Shown here one piece after another: positions 1 to 14,223 of a stretch of DNA of 64,000 bases. The position numbers and the translations under genes were made by a program. Position 1 is the stretch's first letter; each line of letters starts with the position of its first letter. The notes under the pieces were generated by a model, which did not search any database, was not told the DNA's origin, and saw only the letters and a program-made list of their open reading frames with translations. This stretch comes from Salpingoeca rosetta. Lineage: Eukaryota > Protista > Choanoflagellata. The stretch lies in the NCBI GenBank assembly GCA_033442325.1, contig JAWQFM010000012.1, positions 1 through 64,000 on the forward strand. The letters run 5' to 3'.

Positions 1-78
1 ACACACACACACACACACACACACAGACAGGCGCACAGACGCACATGCGCGCACATGCCAACGTCGACGTGCACTCAC

Positions 79-473
79 AGCCTGTCGAGGATCTTCTGCT
101 CAAAGTCCACCAAGTACTTCTCCTGTTCCTCTGGGGTCATGTCACCCTGCCTCAACCGTTCATAGAGCGCCGCTTTCGCCTTGAGCTTCGCTTCAACCTG
201 TACTAGGCTCTGGCCCTCCTGCTCCTGCTGCAGTACATCTCGCCTGTGCCGCTCCAACACGCCTTTGTTCTGCTTGATCCAGCCCGCTGCACGCTTCGAC
301 TTGCGCTGCTGCAGCCGCTCATCCCGTGCTGATGGGTCGTTTTTCTCTCGCACGTACTCCTCCTGCTTCCGCGCAAGTTCTGCCTTCAGGTTCACCAAGC
401 TCGCCGTGTTCACGTTGTTTCCTTGCGCCTGCCGCGCCGTCGAGCTGGGCCATCGCGACGACGACGACGACAT
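79..473 (-). CDS. CCDC174: CCDC174 homolog, first coding exon (gene continues off the left edge)
   Basis: ATG at 473. Translation SLVNLKAELARKQEE...WIKQNKGV...KLKAKAALYERL...YLVDFEQKI matches the conserved CCDC174 N-terminus. GTGAGT donor starts at 78. Confidence 0.8.
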
Positions 474-577
474 GATGCGGGTGTGCGCGGTGAACGTTCG
501 CTGGCCTGTCGCCGTTATGGTGTGAGCTTGGGTGAAAACGCGCTGCACAAACCAAGGAGTTGAGGCAACAGAGGGAG

Positions 578-1303
578 AGAGAGAGAGATGAGGAAGCTGC
601 GCAGGCAGAAGAAGCACGTGATTATGCTTGTGTGTGATGTGTGATGTGTGTGTGATGAGTGTGTGAGCTTGTGTAAGTGATATGTGGCGGAGTCTCTCTT
701 CCACTCTCTCCTGCTTCTTCTCGTCCTCCTTCTTTCTTGTCCCAAGTCGCTCGCTTGCCTCCAATCTGTCTGTCTGCTGTGCACTCGCCGTTGCTTGTGA
801 GTGTGTTTGTGCTTGTCCCAACAGCTGCCTGCCTGCCTCACTCACTTGTTGCTTGTTGCTTGCGTGTGCTCTGCCTCAGCAGCCAGCTTTGCGAGAGAGA
901 GAGTGTGTGTCAGCCTTGTTGCTTGCTTGCCCAACTCACAACCAAAAAAAAAGAAGCAAGTGGGGCATGCCAGGATCGAACTGGCGACCTCAGGATTGCT
1001 CCTCAAGCGAGGATCATATCATTAGCGGATTATGAGACCTGCGCGCTAACCAACTGCGCCAATGCCCCCGGGGTTTGCTTGCCCGAAGTGGCAAAATTTG
1101 TTCATCTCAATCATGTGCGTCAACTGTGTGCCTTGTTTGTGTCCGCTGCTTTCATTATTTGCGCAGCGTTCCAGCCAGTACAGAAGAAGAGAAGAGGACA
1201 AGAAGCAAGCAACTAAGAAGCAAGCAAAAGAGCAGACCCTACCAAGACAGGAGCAGATCGAAGCGCTAGCAGAACAGAAGACATCAACGACATCACGACA
1301 CAC
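578..1303. repeat. Left arm of a long inverted repeat (partner 6010-6752)
   Basis: Reverse complement of 6010-6752. The ORF track shows mirror peptides (1062+ vs 6000-; 75- vs 6485+). A few substitutions and microsatellite-length differences occur in the outer part. Confidence 0.97.
961..1068 (-). tRNA. tRNA-Met(CAT), elongator type, 34-nt intron
   Basis: GGGGCAT/ATGCCCC acceptor stem, GCGC D-stem, CAGGT-CT-CAT-A anticodon arm with U31:U39, GCCAG-TTCGATC-CTGGC T arm, intron at 37/38, downstream T run. Confidence 0.93.
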
Positions 1304-1320
1304 GACAAGACAATAGCAAG

Positions 1321-1360
1321 GGGCAAGAGAGGGCAAGACAGGGCAAGAGAGGGCAAGAGA
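1321..1360 (+). repeat. 10-bp tandem repeat (GGGCAAGAGA)x4 upstream of the LRR gene
   Basis: gggcaagaga gggcaagaca gggcaagaga gggcaagaga. Confidence 0.9.
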
Positions 1361-1415
1361 GTCTGCGACGTCCCACCCAAAACCCCATCAAGGGAAGTCA
1401 GCAACCACAACAGCC

Positions 1416-2809
1416 ATGTCCGTTGGAGAGGAGAAGGTGTTGCAGGCCTTGTTGGCACACACGGCGCTGGAGGATGAGGTGAAGGACACGATTAGGTCGA
1501 TCGCCGACAACACATGTCGTGACTTTGTTCGGTGAGTGCAAGCAAGCGGTTGGAGAAACAGGACACGGGTGATTGTTGCCTCACTTATGTTCGTGAGCTT
1601 GTTAGATCTTGCGTGTTGCGTCTTGCGTGCATGGGTACAGTTGCACAACCTAGACCCACGAAGAGCGCTCGTCACACATAAAGTCTCGTGCTTGCTCCTC
1701 GTGTCATCCTCGTTCTCTTGCTCATCGTCCACGATTTGGCATCACAGCCTGCAGAGCGCTGGTCTCGGCAACAGCGGGGCGCGTGCGGTAGCCGAAGCGC
1801 TCAAGGACAACATCTGCTTGAAATGGCTTGAGTGCGTGGTGATATGGACTGCATTCTATCGCGTGACACACATGGCTGATTGGGCTGATGTTGCGCGCTG
1901 CACTCTTTCTCCCCTTGCATTCGTGTCTCTTTTCGTTACGCAGTTTGATATGCCCACTTTTGATCTCTGCTGTCCGTGTGCGCAGTCTAGCTTGCAACCA
2001 CATCGGCGATCAGGGCGCTGTGATGCTGGCGGAAGCGCTTAAGCACAGCACGACCTTGGCGGGACTCGAGTGAGTGCTCACATACATGCGTTGAAGGGAC
2101 ACGAGTTTGAGTGCTACATATTTGCGTCGCTATGCGTGCACATGTGCAGGCCCATCGGCTGTTTGGCTGCTGGCCGCTCATCGTGCCCGTGGCGGCGCAC
2201 TCAACCCGTGTCTCGGATAATCAATCATCATCGTCATCATCACACTCACTCACTCACTCACTCACTCACTCACTCCACTCACACACACACACACACACAC
2301 ACTCTCTCTCTCTCTCTTGTCTGCACAGCTTGAGGGATAATTCAATCCGTAACGAGGGCGCAATGGCACTGGCGGAAATGCTTAAGCACAACATGCCCCT
2401 CGACCTACTTATGTGAGTGCAAGTGCCTATTGAATGGAGTGTCTATGCTATACCGTTGTCGCTACATTCCCCATGGGAAACTCGACCCGAGACACAGTGA
2501 GTCACGCATGACGTGTTTAGCTGCGTCGTGCTTCAATTCATCACTGCGTCATAAGAGCGCGCGCGACTGGTGTTACTTCTTGTGCTTTGCCACTGTCTCA
2601 TTCGTGGCTCTGCTTGCTGCTTGTCTTTCGATCTCATTCCGCTTTCCCTCAACATCTTCCCGTGAACCTGCTTGCCACCCCAGCTTAAGCAACAACTCCA
2701 TCATGTCAGTTGGCGGTACGGCGCTGGGTGCTGCCCTTCACCGAAATCGCACCCTGGAACGACTCTGGTGCGTCGATTGCGCTGCAGCTGTCTCGTGTGT
2801 CTCGTGTGT

Positions 2810-2891
<82 letters not shown>

Positions 2892-2935
2892 CGTGTGTGT
2901 GTGCGTGTGTGTGTGTGTGTGCGTGTGTGTGTGTG

Positions 2936-2982
<47 letters not shown>

Positions 2983-4242
2983 TGATGAATCGCTGCTCCC
3001 AGTCACGCTACGATACGCCTTGCTCCCCTGTGTCACACCGGTCTCACTTCTCACCAACACGAGTCCTTGATACTCCCGCACCGCAACACTCACCTGCCTG
3101 CTGCCATGTCCTGGTCACTGACCAACGCTCTAACCCTTGAACTACACCCGTGTCTTGAACATCCTCACCGCGTGTTTGTCAACCATTCAGGGTCGAGAAC
3201 AACTCCACCGCCACAGCCCGCGCCTTTGGTGCCGCGCTGCCCGTCAATCGCGCGGTGATCACAAGCTGGTCAGTCCACATTCCGACTTGCAGCTGCAAGC
3301 GCTTGCTTCCTATCCACACCCAGCTCGCTTCTCCTGTCCACACCTCACACTCCACTCTTTGATTGTGATGATTACTCCCCATCCCCAACATCTTGTGTGA
3401 TCAAAGGGACCAGCACGACGAGAGCCTGACCGCCTTTTTTGCAGCTCGCGAAGAGAAGAAGCAGCAACTTGAGCAACTGTTTGCCGCCTGCAAGAGCGGC
3501 GACGCTCCAGCTGTCACCTCTTTCCTCACCCAAGACAACACAGACATCAACCAACAAGACGAAGAGGTGTGTGCACGTGCGAACTCGTATTAACATGCGT
3601 CAAATATTCATTGTAACGGGGCGTGTGGGCTTGTATCCACGGGATTCTCACTTCAAGTCCCTGCTTCTCCATTCAACTGCAGGGCGACACGCCACTGCAC
3701 GTTGCCTGCAGGCACAATCAGTCCGCCATCGTGAAGAAGGTCCTTGAGAAGGGCGCAGACACTTCCATCAAGAACAAGCAGGTGTGCTTCCCTTCGCATG
3801 CTGATGTCGATGCTGTCGATGCGCTACCTCACTTGCGTTGTCTGCTTTGGTTTGCTTGCACTGCATCCTCTTCGCCAGCTTATTGCTTGCTGTTGTTTTC
3901 ACAATCGGCCACATACAGGGAGATACACCGTTCGATGTGGCGACAGCCAATGATCACACTGCCATCACCAGCATCCCAGGACTCAACCTTGAGAGCAAAT
4001 CCCAGGAACGACAAGTGGAACGGCCACAACAACAGCAACAGCAGCAGCAGGAGAAGAACAAGGAGGAGGAGAAGAACAAGGAGGAGGAGAAGAACAAGGA
4101 GGAGGAGGAGGAGGAGGGGGAGGAGGAGGAGGAGGAGGAGGGGGAGGAGGGGGAGGAGGGGGAGGAGGAGGAGGAGGAGGAGGAGGAGGAAGAAGACCCG
4201 CCTGCGTCCACCCGTTCCACCAAACCGAAGCAAGACGAATGA
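1416..4242 (+). CDS. RI-type (NLRC3-like) LRR + ankyrin repeat protein with Glu-rich tail, about 9 exons
   Basis: Exons 1416-1531, 1748-1831, 1986-2069, 2329-2412, 2684-2767 (LxxNxIGDxGAxxLAEALKxN), 3191-3268, ~3408-3567, 3683-3781 (GDTPLHVAC), ~3918-4242 (GDTPFDVA...EEEE...KQDE*). Canonical GT-AG junctions. Confidence 0.8.
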
Positions 4243-4383
4243 ATGAGCAGCGCGCAAGGCGTGAGTGATCAGACATTGTTTGCATGCAAGCAACGCGGGC
4301 AATGCAGGCACACGCGTACATCGCACCGCTCGTGTCACTCGTGCTCTTCATGCCCTGTCCTCTAACACGGTGTCGCTCACCAG

Positions 4384-6009
4384 AACGACGACCACAGCTG
4401 CGCCCCATGATCCAGGACCTGCGCCAGATCATCTCCTCCACAGCACTGGCACAGGAGTGCGTGAGCCAGGAGGTGGCTGTGTCCTACCTCCACCTCTACG
4501 ACAAACTGATGGCACTGAGCAAGGACGAGAAGCGACCGCTGCTCACGATTGATGGGGTGGTGGACATTGCGCGCACATGTGGGCTGCGCACACGTGAGGA
4601 GACAAGAGCGTGCCTCCAGTTCCTGCACCTGTACTCAATGGTGTTGTGCTACGACAGCGTACCAGGCATGGAGGACCATGTGATCCTAGATACGCAGTAC
4701 AATGACGCGCGTCATCCGCACCTTTGACCTGCACCGCGATGTGCGTGATGGAGAGTCGAGGGCCGTTGGCGCGCAGCTGTGGGATGACTTAGTTGACCGC
4801 GGCATCCTGCATTGTCGCTTGCTCGACGTGTCGTGGAGGGACGTGGACAGCAAGTTGGTTGACCCGTTCCCTGCGCCTAGTGATGCAGTACGGGCTGTGC
4901 ATTGACTACTCTCCACCCAAGCTGGTCGACAGCCGCAGAGCGCTCGCTTGCGCCAACTCCGGCCACGGTGACAACGATGCGAGCCAGAGCAAGGGCAGCA
5001 GTCCCGGGCACCAGCAATACCTGGTCCCAGCCATCCTGCCGATGACGATCCGCCACAGCAGCAGCACGATGGCATCCGTGTCGCTGAGCACGACAGCAGC
5101 ACAGCAGGTCAACCCGTATCTTGGGCACGAGGAGAAGACGGCCTACGTCGCCTTCAGCCTGAAGCAATTCAAGCGAAGTGCGAGCGTGTGTGCTGGAGAC
5201 GCACAGCACGCGTCTTTCCTGCCCGAGGGGCTGTTTACCGTGGTGCTGGCGCATGTGATGGCGCACGCGCAGCACGGCGCATCTCAGGCGCCCAAGCTGA
5301 GTCGCACCCACGCCGTCTGCTTCATGGAGTCGACCAAGCTTGAGCTGCAGCTTGTGCCGGCTGTTGGCGGCATCAAGATGAAGATCACGAGTGCGCAGCC
5401 AGGCGCCATGCTGCACATGCTGCACACCATGATCAGCGAGGCCGCCAGAGAGCGCTATTTTGAGCTGAAGAGCAGCCTCCTGCTGCCATTTGACGACAAG
5501 ATGCTTCTGTTCTTTGAAGATGTGTTGTACCACCACAAGAGCAAGCAGGACATGTGGGTAGACGAACAGCTGCTGCCGCCCGATGACCTTGTCGCCAAGT
5601 ATGGCCGTCTCTTGCCCGTACTCGGCCTGCAGGACAAGTACGACGTCTTCATCAGCTACAGGTGAGCTGTCTGTGTGTGTGTGTATTGCGCGTGTATGTG
5701 TATGTGTATGTGTATGTGTGTGTGTGTGTGTCGCTGCAACCTACCACCACAACTTCCCCTCCTCACACCAACCTCCACCACCACCACCATCACCACAGGC
5801 AACGCGCCAACATGGTGATGGCGCTGCATCCGCGCTTGGAGCAGCATAACCTGGTTGCGTTCCTGGACGCCAACAACCTGGAGACGGGCCTCAACTTCAA
5901 GCTGTCGTTCATGACGGCGATTGGGCTGAGCCTGGTGGCCTGCCCCATCGTCTCTGCTGCCACCATCATGCAGATGAGGCAGCTGCAGCACAGCGACTAC
6001 TATCCTGCG
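4384..6009 (+). pseudogene. COR + TIR domain remnant of a ROCO-type gene; two frameshifts, TIR truncated by the right repeat arm
   Basis: COR-like LQFLHLYSMVLCYDSVPGMEDHVILD, YLVPAILP and FLPEGLF lie in three successive frames (shifts near 4697 and 4870). TIR-like YDVFISYR / VAFLDANNLETG is cut at 6009. Confidence 0.75.
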
Positions 6010-6244
6010 GTGTGTCGTGATGTCGTTGATGTCTTCTGTTCTGCTAGCGCTTCGATCTGCTCCTGTCTTGGTAGGGTCTGCTCTTTTGCTTGCTTCTTAG
6101 TTGCTTGCTTCTTGTCCTCTTCTCTTCTTCTGTACTGGCTGGAACGCTGCGCAAATAATGAAAGCAGCGGACACAAACAAGGCACACAGTTGACGCACAT
6201 GATTGAGATGAACAAATTTTGCCACTTCGGGCAAGCAAACCCCG

Positions 6245-6352
6245 GGGGCATTGGCGCAGTTGGTTAGCGCGCAGGTCTCATAATCCGCTAATGATATGAT
6301 CCTCGCATGAGGAGCAATCCTGAGGTCGCCAGTTCGATCCTGGCATGCCCCA
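6245..6352 (+). tRNA. tRNA-Met(CAT), elongator type, intron 6283-6316
   Basis: Full cloverleaf, anticodon CAT at 6279-6281. Exons identical to the copy at 961-1068, one intron difference. Confidence 0.93.
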
Positions 6353-6360
6353 TTTGCTTC

Positions 6361-6368
6361 TTTTTTTT
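6361..6368 (+). terminator. Pol III oligo-dT terminator
   Basis: T run shortly after the tRNA 3' end, mirrored by the A run just left of 961. Confidence 0.7.
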
Positions 6369-6822
6369 GTGAGTTGGGCAAGCAAGCAAGCAAGCAAGGC
6401 GAAGCAGCGGCTGACACACACACACACACTCTCTCTCACAAGGTTGGCTGCTGAGGCAGAGCACACGCAAGCAACAAGCAACAAGTGAGTGAGGCAGGCA
6501 GGCAGCTGTTGGGACAAGCACAAACACACTCACAAGCAACGGCGAGTGCACAGCAGATAGACAGATTGGAGGCAAGCGAGCGACTTGGGACAAGAAAGAA
6601 GGAGGACGAGAAGGAGCAGGAGAGAGTGGAAGAGAGACTCCGCCACATATCACTTACACAAGCTCACACACTCATCACACACACATCACACATCACACAC
6701 AAGCATAATCACGTGCTTCTTCTGCCTGCGCAGCTTCCTCATCTCTTTCTCTGTGTGTGTGTGTGTGCTGGTTCTCCCTGCTTCCCGTCCATCCACACTG
6801 ACAGCCCTCCAGATAGCCAACC

Positions 6823-7953
6823 ATGTCCTCTGGACAACATCGGCCCCTACATGAGCAGCTGAGAGCGGTGCGCCTAAAACCCACGACCGCCAGGCTCGCA
6901 GCCAAGAAGCCACAGCCAGTGCGCGGCCTCGTCGCAGATGCACATGACGATGTCATCACTGATGCCGCATTCAGCTACGACGGTACAGTGTGCGTGTGCG
7001 CGCGTGTCTGTGTGCGTGTCTGTGTGCGTGTCTGTGTGTGCGTGTGTGTGTGTGTGTGTGTGCACGCGTACGATGGTCAGCTCTTCTCTCCTCCACTCTT
7101 CCCTCTGCTCTTCCTCCCTCCCTCTCTCAGTCTCGCCTCGTGACGCTCGTTCCTCACTTCGTCCAACACTTCAAATGGTTCATCTGTCAGGCACCCGATT
7201 GGCCACTGGCAGTGCCGATGGCTACGTGAACATCTTTGACCTCGTGGACGGCCGCTGGATTCGCTCCCAGAAGAGACCTGTAAGTTGGCTGGCGTTGACC
7301 TGGCGTTTGGTGGTTTCTCTGCTCACCTCTGCTTACCTCTGCTTACTTCTTCTTACCTCTGCTTACCTCTGCTTACCTCTGTTTCAGTTCCTTCACACAG
7401 AGAGAGAGAGACAGACAGACAGACAGAGACAGAGACAGAGACACACACACACACACACACACAGACACTCACACGCTCACACGCTCACACAATGTCACTC
7501 ACTGTTACCTTTGCGGCTGGCAGGAGCTCGGCAGTGCCGTGTCGAAGCTGGCGTGGGCGCACCCATATTATGGTCAACTGATTGCTTGTGCAGGATACCG
7601 AGGGCACCTGAGCATCTTCGCTGAAGAGCGTGCGTGCGCTATGTGCTGCACACGCATGCGTGTGAACAACTGCACGTACATGTGTGCATGTGTGCGTGTG
7701 AACAAGTGCACGTGCGTGACTGCTTGGACATGTTCTCTCTAATCTCTCCCAACCCACTTGTGCGACCACTGCCGCCCTCCGCAACTGACTGCACTGCAGC
7801 TGGAGCCGAGCTGCAGCAAGGGCAGATGACGTGGGCAGCCCGCATGGACTTTTCCGACACACACGCGATCACAGACCTCCGCTTTGCGCCCCAGCAGCTC
7901 GGCCTTATCCTCGTGCGTATGCGTTGTGTGAATGTGTGTGTGTGTGTGTGTGA

Positions 7954-8009
<56 letters not shown>

Positions 8010-8710
8010 AAAGTGGGTGTGTGGAAAGTGGTGAGCGAGTCAGTGTGAGTTGGTGTGAGTGTGTGTGCGTGTGTCAGCATGTGAATGCAAGGCGTTCGTG
8101 TGTGTGTGTGTGTGTCACCGAGTGAGCATGCGGTTGCATGGTGTGTGGAGGGTGCGACACGATGTGCGTGCTTTGCACAGTGCTTGCGAGTTCACTCACA
8201 CCCTTTGTCCTCTCCATCATATCGCCCGTCCCCAAACCCTCGCAGGTTGCATGTTATGCCGACGGGTTTGTGCGTTTTCTCAAGGCCGAGGCCCCATTTG
8301 AGCCTGTCGAGTGGCGCGTTGTGGTGAGTCGACAGTCATGCATCCAATACACAAGCATCATTCTTGCTGCTGCTACTGCCACATCTTCCCAATCGTGCAG
8401 CGTTTCATGTTATGCATCCTCCCAATTGTGCCACCTCCCAATCGTGCATGTGCCACCCTCCTCTCGTCCTCTCATGGCACGGTGCAATGGTGCAACGGTG
8501 CAACGGTGCAGGTGTCTGCGAACCTGCGCGGGTCTGGGGTGCCGACTGTGGACTGGTGCGAGCGGCGGACGTGGGATTACGTCATGGCGCTCGGCGCACG
8601 CGAGGGCGACCACGGTGTCCGCCTCTACCACTACGACCAGGAATCCCTGTACGCTTCTGTAGAAGAGTGCGTGTGTGTGTGCGTGTGTGTGTGCGTGTAT
8701 GTTGTGTGTG

Positions 8711-8791
<81 letters not shown>

Positions 8792-9871
8792 GTGTGTGTC
8801 CGTGTGTGTGTGTGTGTGTGTGTCCCCGTGTGCACATGTGATTGTGCAACGCCAATGTGTGGTGTGTTTTACCACACATTCCTTGTTCCTTTTCACCCCA
8901 TCCACCGTCCTTTCACCCCTCCTTTCGCCCGTCCCTTCACCTGCGTTCTTCACCGCAGGGAGCTTGACATGGCTGAAAAAGTTCAAGCTGAGCCTGCCAC
9001 CAGCATCGCCTTTGCGCCAGCAATGGGCAGGTCCGTGGCCATGCACGTGTGTGTATATGTATGTGCACGCATCTCCGTGTACGAGCACGTGTGTGTGTGT
9101 ATGTGTGTGTGTGTGCGTGTGTGTGTGCGTGTGTGTGTGAGCACGAGTTTATATGTATGTGTATGTGTGCATGCTCGCCAAACGCACACATGTACATCCC
9201 AAGTACACCCGTGTATACATGCCCAGCATGCCCTTCGTTCCGTTCCTTCCCTTCCCTCTCCGTTTCCGTTTCCGTTTCCCCTTCCCCTTCCCTTTCCCTT
9301 CCGTTCTCCTTCCATTTCCTCCTACCTCATCTCACCCCCCTCCCCTCCCAATCCGCAGGTCATATCTGCTGTTGGCGGTGGCCATGCCAGACGGAGTCGT
9401 GCGCGTCCACAAAATACACAAGTCCGCTGATTATGATGATCCTGATGTGACTGTCGTTGTTGATTGTTGCCTCGTGAATTCACACCCCCGCCCCCACACA
9501 CACGCACACACCGCTCTCCCTCCCACCGTTTTACCACATCACCATCAACGTCACCTGTACTCATGTTCATCCCTTCTCCTCGTCCTCGTCCTCCTCCACC
9601 TCTAATTCCATTCGACTGCACGGCAGGGTGCGGATCAAGGGTGCGCCGCCCAAATACCGACCGGAGCTCATCTTCGATCGCCATTTGCACAAGGGCATGG
9701 TGAGGCCATGCTGGCACACCCCACATGCCAACCCCNNNNNNNNNNNNNNNNNNNNNNNNNNNNNNNNNNNNNNNNNNNNNNNNNNNNNNNNNNNNNNNNN
9801 NNNNNNNNNNNNNNNNNNNNNNNNNNNNNNNNNNNTCTCACACACACACGCACACGAGTCAGGCGCACGAG

Positions 9872-9955
<84 letters not shown>

Positions 9956-10099
9956 ACATACACACACTTCCTGCCTTCATCTCGTCCACTGCAATTTGCA
10001 AATGGTTCAAGGTGCAATTTTATTCGTGCAAAGCATGGCTCGCTGGGAATGTTGGTTGCTGTGCCTGGACAGTGGTTGCCGTGTGACGTCGCGTTGTGA
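6823..10099 (+). CDS. SEH1: Nucleoporin SEH1-like WD40 protein (multi-exon; 3' end uncertain because of the N gap)
   Basis: HDDVITDAAFSYDG/TRLATGSADG, LAWAHPYYGQLIAC, DLRFAPQQLGLIL/VACYADGFVR and SIAFAPAMGR/SYLLLAVA match SEH1 motifs (WAHPEFGQ, FAPxxxGLxLA, FAPNLGRS). Confidence 0.8.
7321..7380 (+). repeat. Intronic 10-bp tandem repeat (GCTTACCTCT)x6
   Basis: Directly visible, with a few variant units. Confidence 0.9.
9736..9835. other. Assembly gap (100 N)
   Basis: N run. Confidence 1.
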
Positions 10100-10269
10100 G
10101 TTGTGGGGCAATGGGCTGGGGGTGACGGAGTGTGGAAGCTGCCAGCGCACGCAAAGCCGCTCCCAAGCAACAACAGCGGGCAAGACACAGCCAAGATGCT
10201 TCATTTTCTTCTTCCCCACTCCATCAACACGATTCCTTCGTGAGCAGTGAGCCTCCCCCCACTTCCACG

Positions 10270-10703
10270 ATGCGCGCTTCCGCCTTCACGGGCACCCTGC
10301 TAGTGGTGCTCGCTTTCAGCGTGCTCGCTCGTTCCGCCACACACGCCATCGTCAACGACGTGAGTGCGCGGATACAAATGATTGAGACAGTGCTCTGCTT
10401 GCTCTGCTTGGAAGGAAGAGGGGTGCTCTGCTTGAGGTCTTGTGCCCTTGAACACTTGGACCCTCTCCCCTCTGTTTTCCCTGTGCTCCTTGCTTCCCTT
10501 GTCGTGTTTGGCACATTCAACTGGCTCAGCTTCTACGACTCTACATCGTACTCACCCCCAACACCCACGAATGTACTACTGCAGACTGTCGTTCTTGGAG
10601 ATGAACTCAGCCCATCCGAATTCCTTGCAGAAGTGGTGAGCCCATTCGACAACAACGGATCCGCGCTGTGTGTGTGTGTCTGTGTGTGTGTGTGTGCGTG
10701 TGT

Positions 10704-10760
<57 letters not shown>

Positions 10761-10999
10761 TGTGTGTATGCACCTGCTGTTGTCAACGGCCTTCCTCTTC
10801 CTCCCCCCCCCCTCTTCGTGCACCACAACAACACCTCTGCCTCACCCAGCAAATCAAACTTGTCCTCCACGTTCTTGATGTCCAAAAGGCAATCGATGGC
10901 TGCGCCAGCTTGACAGCTGCTTCCGAAGGCTACCACTTTGAAGGAGGCCAGGCGTCTGGTCTCTCCCAGGACCGCTGCACCACAGGTACACCTGGCTGT

Positions 11000-11062
<63 letters not shown>

Positions 11063-11558
11063 CTCTCGAATGTGTGCGTGCGTGTGTGTGTGTGTGCATG
11101 TGTGTGGACATGTTTTGTGCTTCTTGGCAGTGCCACCCAATACGCGCCACTTCTTCCTCATCATCGCCATGACCGCCAACGCTGCGACAGGTGGAACGTG
11201 CCAGTGCAAGAGTTTCAGCGATTCCTGCGATAGCGGAGGTGAGACACACCGGCCACTGTGATTGGTTTTGAGTGTTTGTTGAGAACTCCCACGCTTGCCA
11301 TCCACCCGCATTTAACCAAGCCCGTCAACCTCATCAACCTGCCCACACTCACTTGCTCACGCACACACACGCACACACACACACGCGCGCGCACATTGCT
11401 TGTCCTTCAGATTGCTACAAAGTGTACCGTTGCAATGACACCGCCGCTGATGGCTGCTTTGCCGTCTCAAACTGCACGCAGACCGTTTTCACCACGGTCA
11501 TGGAGGTGCGTTCGCGCGTGTGTGAGTGTGTTTTGCACCTCGTGTGCAATGTCATCGC

Positions 11559-11612
<54 letters not shown>

Positions 11613-12534
11613 AACACACATACACACACACACGCACACACACAAACAAACAAACAAACACACAAACAAACAAACAAACAAACAAACACACACACACACA
11701 AACACACGTGATCGTCAACTCACCACCACCTCTTCTCCAACAGGTGGACGTGAACTGCCGCGATCCGCTCGACGAGCGCGACGAGGACGGCATCGACTTC
11801 TTCGGCATGCGCTGGAAGCAGGCCCTCGAGGAAGACTGCAACATTGGACGCGTGAGTTGCACCGTACCGTGATGTCATTCGTCTCATTGTGTGTGTATGT
11901 GTCTCTCTGTGTGTGTGTATGTGTATGTGCCTGTGTGTGTATGTGTGTTTGTTCTTTGTCTCCCTCCGCTCCCCACTCCTAACACACGCCATCCCACGAT
12001 GCGGAATATCTCACGACATCCCTTTCTCTCCCTTCTTACTATCTTCCCTTTTCCCCCATCTCTCCTTTCTCCCTATCTCCCCCCTTCCCCCTCCCCAATC
12101 CACCCAAACACACCATAGGTGTGTCGGTACAACGGCGACACGGCTGCGACGATTGAGGTCATCAACGGCACCACCTTCCGCACCACCACCCTCAACTCGG
12201 CGCACGTCGACACGCTGCAGGAGTGCGCCGCCAACACCAAGTTCCGCTTCAACCGCTGCACCGTCTTGGACGTGCGTGAGATCGAAGTGACAACCACGAC
12301 CACAACAACAACCACCACAACCACGACCACAACAACCACCACAACTACCACCACAACCACCACCACAACTACCACCACCACAACCACGACGCTCGAGCCT
12401 TGCCAGCCATCATGCACTGAAGCCATCGAAAGCTGCCTCGGAAAGGTTTGTTCACAGCACAAAATACATGCCACCTCTCCTCAGGCATAGTTACATACAC
12501 GTACCTGGTGACTATTTGGCCAACGCATGCCACA

Positions 12535-12572
<38 letters not shown>

Positions 12573-14223
12573 CACACACGCACACACACACACGCACACA
12601 ACGCGCGTCCCGCCTTCTCTTCGCACAACTGCAGAGCGTGTTTGAGGACAATGTGCGGGATGCGTTCGCGGACTGCGTGGCAACTGCGGAGCGCCACACA
12701 GACTCGGCCTTTGTTGACTTCGGTATTTGTCTCTCCGGCTGCCCCGAAATGGAGCCAGAGTCTTCCTTTGAGGACATGAAAGCCGTCTTGCGCTGCCAGT
12801 AAGTTTCGTGCCATGCATTTTGCACTTTTGTGTTCGTGCTTGCCTGCATTGTGCGACCATCACCCATCACCCAGGCACTGCGCACCACGCACACATTACA
12901 CCTCTTGTCCTCTCGCTCATTCACGCCTGTTTCCCCCACCCTTGATGCGCTCACAATCACGCAACCATTCAATTTAGCCGATTCTGCGCTCTCTCCACCG
13001 CCAATATGGACTGCAATGTCACCGTCACCACGACCACAACCACCACCACCACCACCACCACCACCACGACGACCACCACGACAACAACCACCACCACCAA
13101 CGCCACGACCACGACGACAACAACCACCACCTCCTTCACGGGCTGCGTCAACGACATGTATGAGCCCAACGACAGCGTGCCTGGCGAAGCGGCCGTGCTT
13201 GGCGGAGGAGACAGCAGCATCTCTGCGGTGATTTGCGACGGCGAGGAGGACGTTTACAGCATTCCCGTGTGCAACGGCACCATCATCATCGAAGTGCTGT
13301 TCGACCACCAGACTGGCGACTTGGACATGGACCTGTACGACAATGGCGGCAATTTCCTGACGTACTCCGCCAGCGCCACCGACAACGAGAGGATCGTGTT
13401 CGCCCACGAAGGCGCCAACTCGACCGTTCTCGTGGACGTGTACGGCTTCGAGGGCCAATCCGCGGCATACACCATGCAGACCACGCTGCTGTGCGGCGAG
13501 CTGTCGTGCCTGGCGGACAACTACGAGCCCAACGACTCACAGATGGCGGCGACATATCTCGGCAACGAGACGACGCAACTGTTCGCCACGGCCTGCCCAG
13601 GCAACAGCGACTACTACGAGGTGTCCGTGTGCCCGGGAGGCGTGCTGTACACGAGTGCGTGGTTCTACGGTGACCTCATCGACATTGACCTCATCATCTA
13701 CGACGCAAACGGGGCACGCGTTGGCGGATCAGAGACATATATCTGGCCAGAAACAGACTACCTGTTCAACACCAACGCCACAGAGGCAACATACTACATC
13801 AAAATCGACGGCTACGACTCCACTGAGTATGCGTACCAGCTGTACGCTTTCATTGACTGCGACCCCGCCTGCACCGACGACGAATATGAGCCGAACGAGA
13901 CCGTGGACACGGCGACGGCCATCGGCACCAACACCGCCTTCAACGCCACCGTGTGCTACGGAGGGTACGATTGGTATCGGGTGACCCCCTGTGCCAACGG
14001 CCTCGTGAGCATCGACGTCTTGTTCGATGTGGACATTGGTGACTTGGACATTTACCTCTATGACCACAACGGCAACGTCCTTGACGCCGGCGAGACCTCA
14101 ACAGACAACGAGCACGTGGAAGGCACGGCGTACATTGTGAATGGCGTGCCCATGTCCTTGTTGGTCGTCGGTTACTTTGGCGTCAACGTGCCTTACGAGG
14201 TACAGGTCTCTACCACATGCTGA
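10270..14223 (+). CDS. Secreted mucin-like protein: signal peptide, Cys-rich domains, two poly-Thr stalks, three C-terminal PPC-like domains
   Basis: MRASAFTGTLLVVLAFSVLA signal. Spliced small exons. Thr tracts at ~12289-12391 and ~13027-13131. Last exon has 3x C-x-D-x-YEPN(D/E)...DLD(M/I)xLYD...TDNE repeats. No TM segment. Confidence 0.75.

Follow-up and report, generated by a model that had tools for sequence, protein, structure and literature searches.

A probable inverted duplication of a promoter and tRNA-Met module around a ROCO-TIR-family pseudogene in Salpingoeca rosetta

Between the divergently oriented genes CCDC174 and SEH1, the genome of the choanoflagellate Salpingoeca rosetta carries two near-identical arms in inverted orientation, each with a whole tRNA-Met gene, that enclose the remains of a gene of the ROCO-TIR family. 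This structure, here called the cassette, lies in the 64,000-nt stretch of DNA that was analyzed (the window; contig JAWQFM010000012.1 of assembly GCA_033442325.1, positions 1 to 64,000 of the forward strand). Scaffolds of the 55.4-Mb genome are numbered C1, C4, C10, C12, C26 and so on, and the window is the start of C12. Support from reads was taken from Logan contigs (DNA and RNA), and splice joints in RNA were taken from run X17. The following features were found at the locus:

78..473, minus strand: coding exon 1 of CCDC174 (open reading frame; homology to P0004 residues 4-115, PF13300/PF25449)
543..845 (alternative 543-758), minus strand: intron in the 5' untranslated region (5' UTR) of CCDC174 (RNA joints 542>846 and 542>759; CT..AC, which is GT..AG on the minus strand)
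578..1316: left arm, 739 nt (inverted-repeat alignment; edges bridged by contigs)
846..900, minus strand: non-coding first exon of CCDC174 (RNA joints at 846; 5' limit approximate, inferred)
961..1068, minus strand: tRNA-Met(CAU), elongator, with a 36-nt intron and a T9 terminator downstream (945-953)
1069..1416, plus strand: promoter and 5' UTR of the inner gene, of which the first 248 nt belong to the arm (RNA contigs 1231-1369 and 1340-1530)
1417..6001, plus strand: ROCO-TIR-family pseudogene, ATG at 1417 (Pfam, RNA introns, paralogue homology)
5997..6752: right arm, 756 nt, with two private 5-nt indels and a 17-nt block common to a third copy of the arm (the far copy, described below)
6245..6352, plus strand: second tRNA-Met(CAU), elongator (Rfam; mature sequence equal to the first)
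6430..6484, plus strand: predicted non-coding first exon of SEH1, placed by symmetry with the left arm (donor AACAA/GTGAGT at 6485)
6823..9735, plus strand: 5' two-thirds of SEH1 (nucleoporin/GATOR2 beta-propeller; exons read; ends at an assembly gap)
9736..9835: scaffold join of 100 N, past which the sequence is the reverse complement of GL832970.1, starting at C12:9836

The arms align in two blocks, 945-1316 with 5997-6368 (372 nt, 98%) and 578-910 with 6420-6752 (333 nt, 98%), with a small indel block between them. Over their whole lengths they are 94.6% identical when gaps are counted, and the enclosed interior measures 4,680 nt. The arm junctions lie at GA/CA tracts, with microhomology of at most 5 nt. 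Unique sequence outside the arms amounts to 104 nt on the left (from the CCDC174 ATG at 473-471 to position 578) and 70 nt on the right (from 6753 to the SEH1 ATG at 6823). Both tRNA genes face outward and match the full tRNA model of Rfam (RF00005, model positions 1-71) with 53.9 bits against a cut-off of 29; the acceptor and T arms fold as expected, and a 36-nt insert follows the anticodon CAU in both genes. ARAGORN called them only when introns were allowed and neither in its default mode, because the intron hides them. The G1-C72 pair and the TPsiC sequence ('GTTCGATCC'), read from the DNA, identify the elongator rather than the initiator type. All copies have the same mature tRNA-Met sequence, with a 1-nt difference in the intron. 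An earlier sequence-only reading of this DNA had described two near-identical inverted arms, each with an intact, outward-facing, intron-containing tRNA-Met gene, lying between divergent CCDC174 and SEH1 with unique flanks of about 175 bp. The alignment, the Rfam scores of both copies, the flanks (174 nt together) and the identity of the two neighboring genes all agree with this description, and alignment and Rfam likewise bear out its proposal of an inverted duplication with complete tRNA genes in the arms.

Exon 1 of CCDC174, which is single copy in the genome, is preceded by an intron whose donor (AACAA/GTGAGT) lies inside the left arm and whose acceptor lies outside it, just upstream of the start codon. 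RNA depth is high at 700-899 and zero at 900-1099. Since an exon within the arm is spliced to CCDC174, the left arm supplies the promoter and the non-coding first exon of this gene. The right arm contains an exon and donor identical to those used in the left arm, and a pyrimidine tract and AG precede the SEH1 start codon; by this likeness, SEH1 would use the right-arm promoter and first exon. On the inner side, the stretch that precedes exon 1 of the enclosed gene also precedes this exon in the far copy. The arm makes up a whole bidirectional promoter module, with the tRNA gene at its center, and because its outer edge falls within an intron, each copy can hand a promoter and a first exon to the gene outside. 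The neighboring genes were identified through relatives of the CCDC174 exon, which contain PF13300/PF25449, and through the spliced partial product P0008, which matches Seh1 with an E-value of 9e-16, versus 6e-6 for SEC13. In a comparison aimed at an empty site, the CCDC174 search returned neither an S. rosetta nor a genomic relative, and the search with the SEH1 exon gave no match.

The interior is occupied by a gene of the ROCO-TIR family. At least four RNA-supported GT..AG introns fall in its LRR part (1531-1746, 1832-1985, 2413/2497-2683 and 2767-3189). Direct Pfam searches identified ANK (E-value 3e-7; repeat at approximately 3680-3780) and COR-A (E-value 4e-7, under Pfam's cut-off), as well as a weak match to LRR_6 (E-value 0.045). 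The COR exon (4404-5662) is read in three frames, with frameshifts near 4700 and 4870. No ROC was found in the inner gene, as nothing in it matches the paralogue ROC exon or the first 170 residues of the COR exon. A GAG/GAA/GGG-rich tract (4004-4208; a Glu/Gly-rich run) is present where paralogues have approximately 1.5 kb of ROC-coding sequence. The TIR exon is a fragment (5797-6001): homology to all five paralogues tested stops at exactly 6001, at ...QLQHSDY and just before the invariant DNVLLEW, and the contig lacks the final ~500 nt of the TIR end.

More than 40 paralogues of the COR-TIR exon, up to 90% identical in amino acids, are spread over many scaffolds. A full-length paralogue on C10 contains Roc, COR-A and COR-B, with TIR_2 in its last exon; the inner gene matches this reference only at 442-3600 (patchy) and 5162-6858. 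TIR_2 was matched in eight of nine paralogue exons (best E-value 5.7e-7), the reference exon falling under the cut-off, and the language-model look-alikes of the TIR exon were all TIR_2. Sequence and profile searches of the PDB with the TIR exon gave no match, and its AlphaFold2 model has a mean predicted local distance difference test score (pLDDT) of 38.8. With ROC absent, COR frameshifted twice and TIR cut, yet with RNA present, the inner gene is a transcribed ROCO-derived pseudogene. The interior had been taken for ~4.7 kb of immune-receptor-like LRR-ANK-COR-TIR cargo; ANK and COR-A stand, a TIR end is indicated through the paralogues, the LRR match is weak, and the whole is a single decayed gene.

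The cassette sits on the first contig of C12 (9,735 bp), which is ended by the 100-N gap. The best named relative of a neighboring open reading frame is S. rosetta PTSG_06700. GL832971.1 and C18 match at 100% with the same coordinates, N runs of 100, 271 and 459 included, and from this and the GL832970.1 match it follows that the genome of the window is the old S. rosetta contig set, re-scaffolded; the idea of a newer assembly from long reads was dropped on these grounds. A repeat of ~2.5 kb (GL832971.1 7000-8800; copies 83-86% identical) was observed within ~40 kb of most scaffold ends, always in the same orientation to the end, as a subtelomeric-type element, and window positions 9839-14120 are a paralogue (78-90%) of the block adjoining this repeat on C18. 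CCDC174 is divided in the record. Its exon 1, on the minus strand at the scaffold start, leaves the contig start through an (AC)n tract, and exons 2 and onwards are found 333 kb away on the plus strand (C12:333,930-335,032), directly after a gap and GT-rich intron sequence. For this reason the 9.7-kb contig is probably misplaced in the scaffold; most simply, it belongs, reversed, in the gap before CCDC174 exons 2 and onwards. Such a misplacement would leave the internal structure of the cassette unaffected. A subtelomeric position of the window was considered and dropped, as its first contig is probably misplaced.

The third copy of the arm (C12:186,561-189,707) runs collinear with window positions 578-1625 in reverse complement and then with window positions 6753-9063. 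Besides the arm, the first of these segments takes in exon 1 of the ROCO-TIR gene and a part of its intron 1. The far copy holds an intact tRNA-Met and is interrupted by gaps at 187,673-187,772 and from 189,708, where 4.7 kb of gap hide its end. Its SEH1 exons encode a protein identical to that of the window, and introns outside microsatellites diverge by approximately 1-1.5%. No ROCO-TIR gene lies to the left of the far copy, where only exon 1 is present. The sole model in the public annotation at this site is a partial SEH1 of 152 aa (P0008). A reading of the far copy as a dead, truncated SEH1 fragment was dropped, since its end lies behind the gap and the visible exons are intact.

A three-way alignment of the left arm (L), the right arm (R) and the far copy (F) gave the following numbers of differences:

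Inner part, 1007-1303: L-R 0/297, R-F 9/294, L-F 9/294
Outer part, 585-1006: L-R 10/417, R-F 4/434, L-F 14/422

In the outer part, L is also without the 17-nt block common to R and F. The arms are thus mosaic, which shows that they exchange sequence by gene conversion between copies. The order in the far copy (gene 5' end, arm, SEH1) is the opposite of the present orientation in the window, and the far copy therefore either predates an inversion or derives from the cassette in a flipped isomeric state. This suggests an inversion or flip in the history of the locus, and the observed divergences favor neither origin of the far copy. Recombination between the arms could, in principle, flip the interior.

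To place the locus among its relatives, the genome tRNA list, in which 63 of 498 candidates were scored, was set against a list of 41 ROCO-TIR paralogue loci. The S. rosetta genome has approximately 104-114 tRNA genes (PMC6188563). At C26, arms of 1,134 nt (96.8%; 195,906-197,011 and 201,194-202,326) with inward-facing tRNA-Trp genes enclose 4.2 kb that hold only the COR-TIR part of a paralogue. At C10, arms of at least 1.2 kb (93.7%) with tRNA-Thr(CGT) surround the full-length ROCO-TIR gene, and symmetric gaps suggest that these arms are really 3-4 kb long. At C4, copies of tRNA-Lys(CTT) surround a paralogue; the two C4 loci together make up a single inverted duplication (at least 7.5 kb, 92%; 2,142,564-2,150,016 and 2,360,941-2,368,249; arms 210 kb apart). 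One of its edges falls within the TIR end of the ROCO-TIR gene, close to an intron of this gene that bears a microsatellite. Such duplications hold every tRNA-Trp gene (two) and every tRNA-Lys(CTT) gene (six) that the genome has.

Several further observations were made at these and other sites. A tandem array of ~125-bp units at C10 (625,792-627,735 and 636,141-637,011; ~15 units in one arm and ~7 in the other) starts inside tRNA-Thr(CGT), so that the 3' part of the tRNA recurs in each unit. At C26, a 27-nt direct repeat (92.6%; 197,020-197,046 and 201,166-201,192) lies flush inside both arms, with one side flipped relative to the arms, and might have been left by a template switch. Over its inner ~100 nt, the C26 arm matches C4:2,155,442-2,155,543 (76%), just upstream of a ROCO-TIR gene and beside a tRNA-Lys, and this match suggests that a conserved 5' exon or promoter of the family may be included in the arms. 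Candidate inverted tRNA pairs away from ROCO-TIR genes appear in the tRNA list at C5:1.42 Mb, C12:0.50 Mb and C1:1.54 Mb. A tRNA-Arg(CCT) with a 223-nt intron (C12:170,965-171,281) was called by ARAGORN without Rfam support and is probably a false positive.

Of the 42 tRNA clusters that were scored, five have a COR-TIR exon within 5 kb, versus 0.31 expected (Poisson P ~2e-5, or ~4e-3 when three independent loci are counted; the window was left out of the count). Every inverted repeat of at least 80 nt in the 244 kb examined contains a tRNA gene, and the placement follows one pattern at all four loci, with one tRNA 0.2-1.2 kb ahead of the gene start and its partner at or beyond the 3' end. This enrichment, the constant placement and the same-tRNA inverted pairs at C26 (Trp), C10 (Thr) and C4 (Lys) speak for a recurrent tRNA-linked process or a selected architecture, in which RNA polymerase III (Pol III) genes trigger inverted duplication through stalled forks or breaks, or tRNA pairs are kept around ROCO-TIR genes as insulators or inversion substrates; the window would then be one instance of a rule and not an accident. 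In fission-yeast centromeres, tRNA genes in inverted repeats can indeed mark chromatin boundaries (PMC6538654, PMC2040200). The tRNA genes lie mid-arm, however, 248-625 nt from either edge and not at the breakpoints, and no scored tRNA lies within 10 kb of 36 of the 41 family loci. Four unselected paralogue loci had no intact tRNA, with only a partial tRNA-like remnant on C9 (1,701,010-1,701,077; Rfam 33.6 bits, model positions 7-64, no ARAGORN call, ~2.4 kb past the 3' end of the paralogue). Moreover, the two C4 loci represent one duplication and not two events, and the tRNA list, with its scored fraction, is incomplete. We therefore regard a tRNA-linked process or architecture as a possible but doubtful explanation.

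The sequence-only reading had also raised a non-autonomous element of the Pack-MULE or foldback type that disperses and reshuffles the receptor family. In such an account the arms are the 740-bp terminal inverted repeats of a DNA transposon that captured a ROCO-TIR gene, and long terminal inverted repeats around gene-derived sequence at gene 5' regions are consistent with it, as is the presence of a MULE-like family in S. rosetta (PMC6875170). The genome contains three copies of the arm, however, all on one scaffold, and three copies of this tRNA. The third arm copy is not in an inverted pair and passes both arm edges into exon 1 of the gene and into SEH1, and so lies within a differently bounded duplication. 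Other arm homologues in the gapped assembly were only GT-rich chance matches, without an autonomous or transposase partner, although in such an assembly this absence is not absolute; none of the other ROCO-TIR loci (40+ paralogues) has this arm. MULE target-site duplications measure 9-11 bp. No target-site duplication is present at the cassette, where the flanks read CAACAGAGGGAG and GTGTGTGTGTGT, or at C26 or C10, whose arms are two-copy, locus-specific and unrelated in sequence to that of the window. The arms themselves consist of a tRNA gene and working promoter and exon sequence of the neighboring genes. Counting the arm copies and their pairing, as had been suggested, thus yielded three copies with the third unpaired, and neither shared ends nor an association with other ROCO-TIR loci emerged. 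What remains is a local, one-off inverted duplication, and the element reading therefore fails; dispersal and reshuffling of the family likewise find no support, scored tRNA genes being scarce at the paralogue loci. A transposon origin appears extremely improbable.

The explanation that we favor, and consider likely, is a segmental duplication, inverted and specific to this locus, of a promoter-plus-tRNA module, and not a mobile element. The duplicated unit would be a ~740-bp intergenic module composed of an outward RNA polymerase II promoter together with a short non-coding exon 1 and its consensus splice donor, the intron-containing elongator tRNA-Met gene, and an inward promoter and 5' UTR of the ROCO-TIR gene. 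One copy of the module would stand at the 5' end of this gene, and a second, inverted copy would have replaced its 3' end, cutting the TIR exon. Each copy would give a promoter and first exon to the gene outside, as the RNA joints show for CCDC174 and as symmetry suggests for SEH1. The enclosed gene would have lost ROC and the COR frame before or after the module was copied, and the arms would since have been partly homogenized by gene conversion. The inverted copy may have originated in break repair or in replicative template switching. Its retention was plausibly helped by the doubling of an otherwise single tRNA gene, and by a breakpoint that fell in a dispensable multi-copy gene.

Several findings weigh against this explanation. 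In the outer part of the arm, R is nearer to F than to L, which misfits a history in which the far copy came first and the inverted duplication followed. A plain staggered-break inversion was considered and is insufficient: a leftover 3' piece of TIR is expected beside CCDC174, and no TIR-like sequence lies between CCDC174 and the left arm, so that at least an event of the deletion or template-switch type is needed. The occurrence of tRNA pairs around ROCO-TIR genes beyond chance leaves something unexplained by a purely one-off, neutral account. Finally, no contig among the listed Logan contigs bridges the junction between TIR and the right arm at 6001, a loose contig end at this position (GCGACAACGTGCTGC...) equals the continuation seen in the paralogues, and none of the public gene calls has an open reading frame product spanning the junction, for which this assembly is the sole source.

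The missing bridge at 6001 is also what an assembly artefact would have in its favor, with the second arm or the TIR junction mis-joined among three near-identical 750-bp copies, and so are the identity of the inner 297 nt of the arms and the location of the cassette on a probably misplaced 9.7-kb contig behind a 100-N join. Yet indels private to the right arm are lacking in the left arm and the far copy, and 10 substitutions occur in the left arm alone. An independent RNA contig from 2023 (515-771) bridges the outer edge of the left arm and reproduces its private variants at 584 and 716 without mismatch, and the inner edge of this arm is bridged by DNA and RNA contigs (1231-1369) that continue into the 5' end of the gene. 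Approximately 80% of the cassette 31-mers are present in runs from eight studies (2013-2025), TIR and the arm share no junction repeat that could mislead an assembler, and C26 and C10 have the same architecture inside larger scaffolds. An artefact is accordingly very unlikely.

Taken as a single locus, the inverted duplication of the promoter-plus-tRNA module is an ordinary kind of rearrangement. With its edge in an intron, the module provides a natural example of promoter and first-exon sharing through duplication. As the complements of tRNA-Met(e), tRNA-Trp and tRNA-Lys(CTT) consist wholly of duplicates, such rearrangements set tRNA gene dosage. The wider pattern could reflect a Pol III-seeded mechanism, selection on tRNA dosage combined with tolerance of breaks in dispensable genes, or an insulator function. 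That tRNA and ROCO-TIR genes are structurally coupled in these unicellular organisms, which among such forms are the most closely related to animals, with Pol III genes repeatedly seeding inverted duplications or being kept as paired insulators, is a tentative idea that we think is probably not correct; if it were, small, invertible, gene-converting cassettes would set tRNA dosage and would truncate, re-promote and flip receptor genes. Should the pattern hold in a gapless assembly, the turnover of candidate immune receptors would, in choanoflagellates, be tied to Pol III genes.

The cassette can be compared with several known systems. It resembles Pack-MULE and foldback elements, in which captured fragments of genes likewise lie between long inverted termini and close to gene 5' ends, but differs in having no target-site duplication, copy family or related autonomous element, and in arms made of host promoter and tRNA. 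A closer parallel is offered by staggered-break inversions; in Drosophila, 17 of 29 inversions are flanked by inverted duplications of unique sequence (PMC1885836; Ranz et al., 2007). As there, a segment with no transposon at its edges lies between inverted copies of sequence that bears genes and was once unique, and the paralogous copy suggests that the segment in the window is opposite to an earlier orientation. In contrast, this segment is only 4.7 kb long, the leftover 3' piece of the cut gene is missing, and a tRNA gene and a bidirectional promoter are part of what was duplicated.

Pairs of tRNA genes in Dictyostelium are often inverted. In Dictyostelium discoideum, tRNA genes with identical anticodons are found in nearby pairs or triplets (Eichinger et al., 2005, cited in PMC8163159), from which it follows that copy number grew by local duplication; in S. 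rosetta, the copies of tRNA-Met(e), tRNA-Trp and tRNA-Lys(CTT) are all duplicates of this kind. The Dictyostelium account describes neither a link to one gene family nor promoter sharing. The imr repeats of fission-yeast centromeres contain whole tRNA genes that act as Pol III-dependent barriers (PMC2040200, PMC6538654), and so provide a precedent, not known to the sequence-only reading, for whole tRNA genes in inverted repeats. The likeness is one of geometry only, with functional tRNA genes placed symmetrically in inverted repeats around a central domain: in fission yeast this is a CENP-A domain and the barrier function was tested, whereas the domain in the window is a pseudogene between housekeeping genes.

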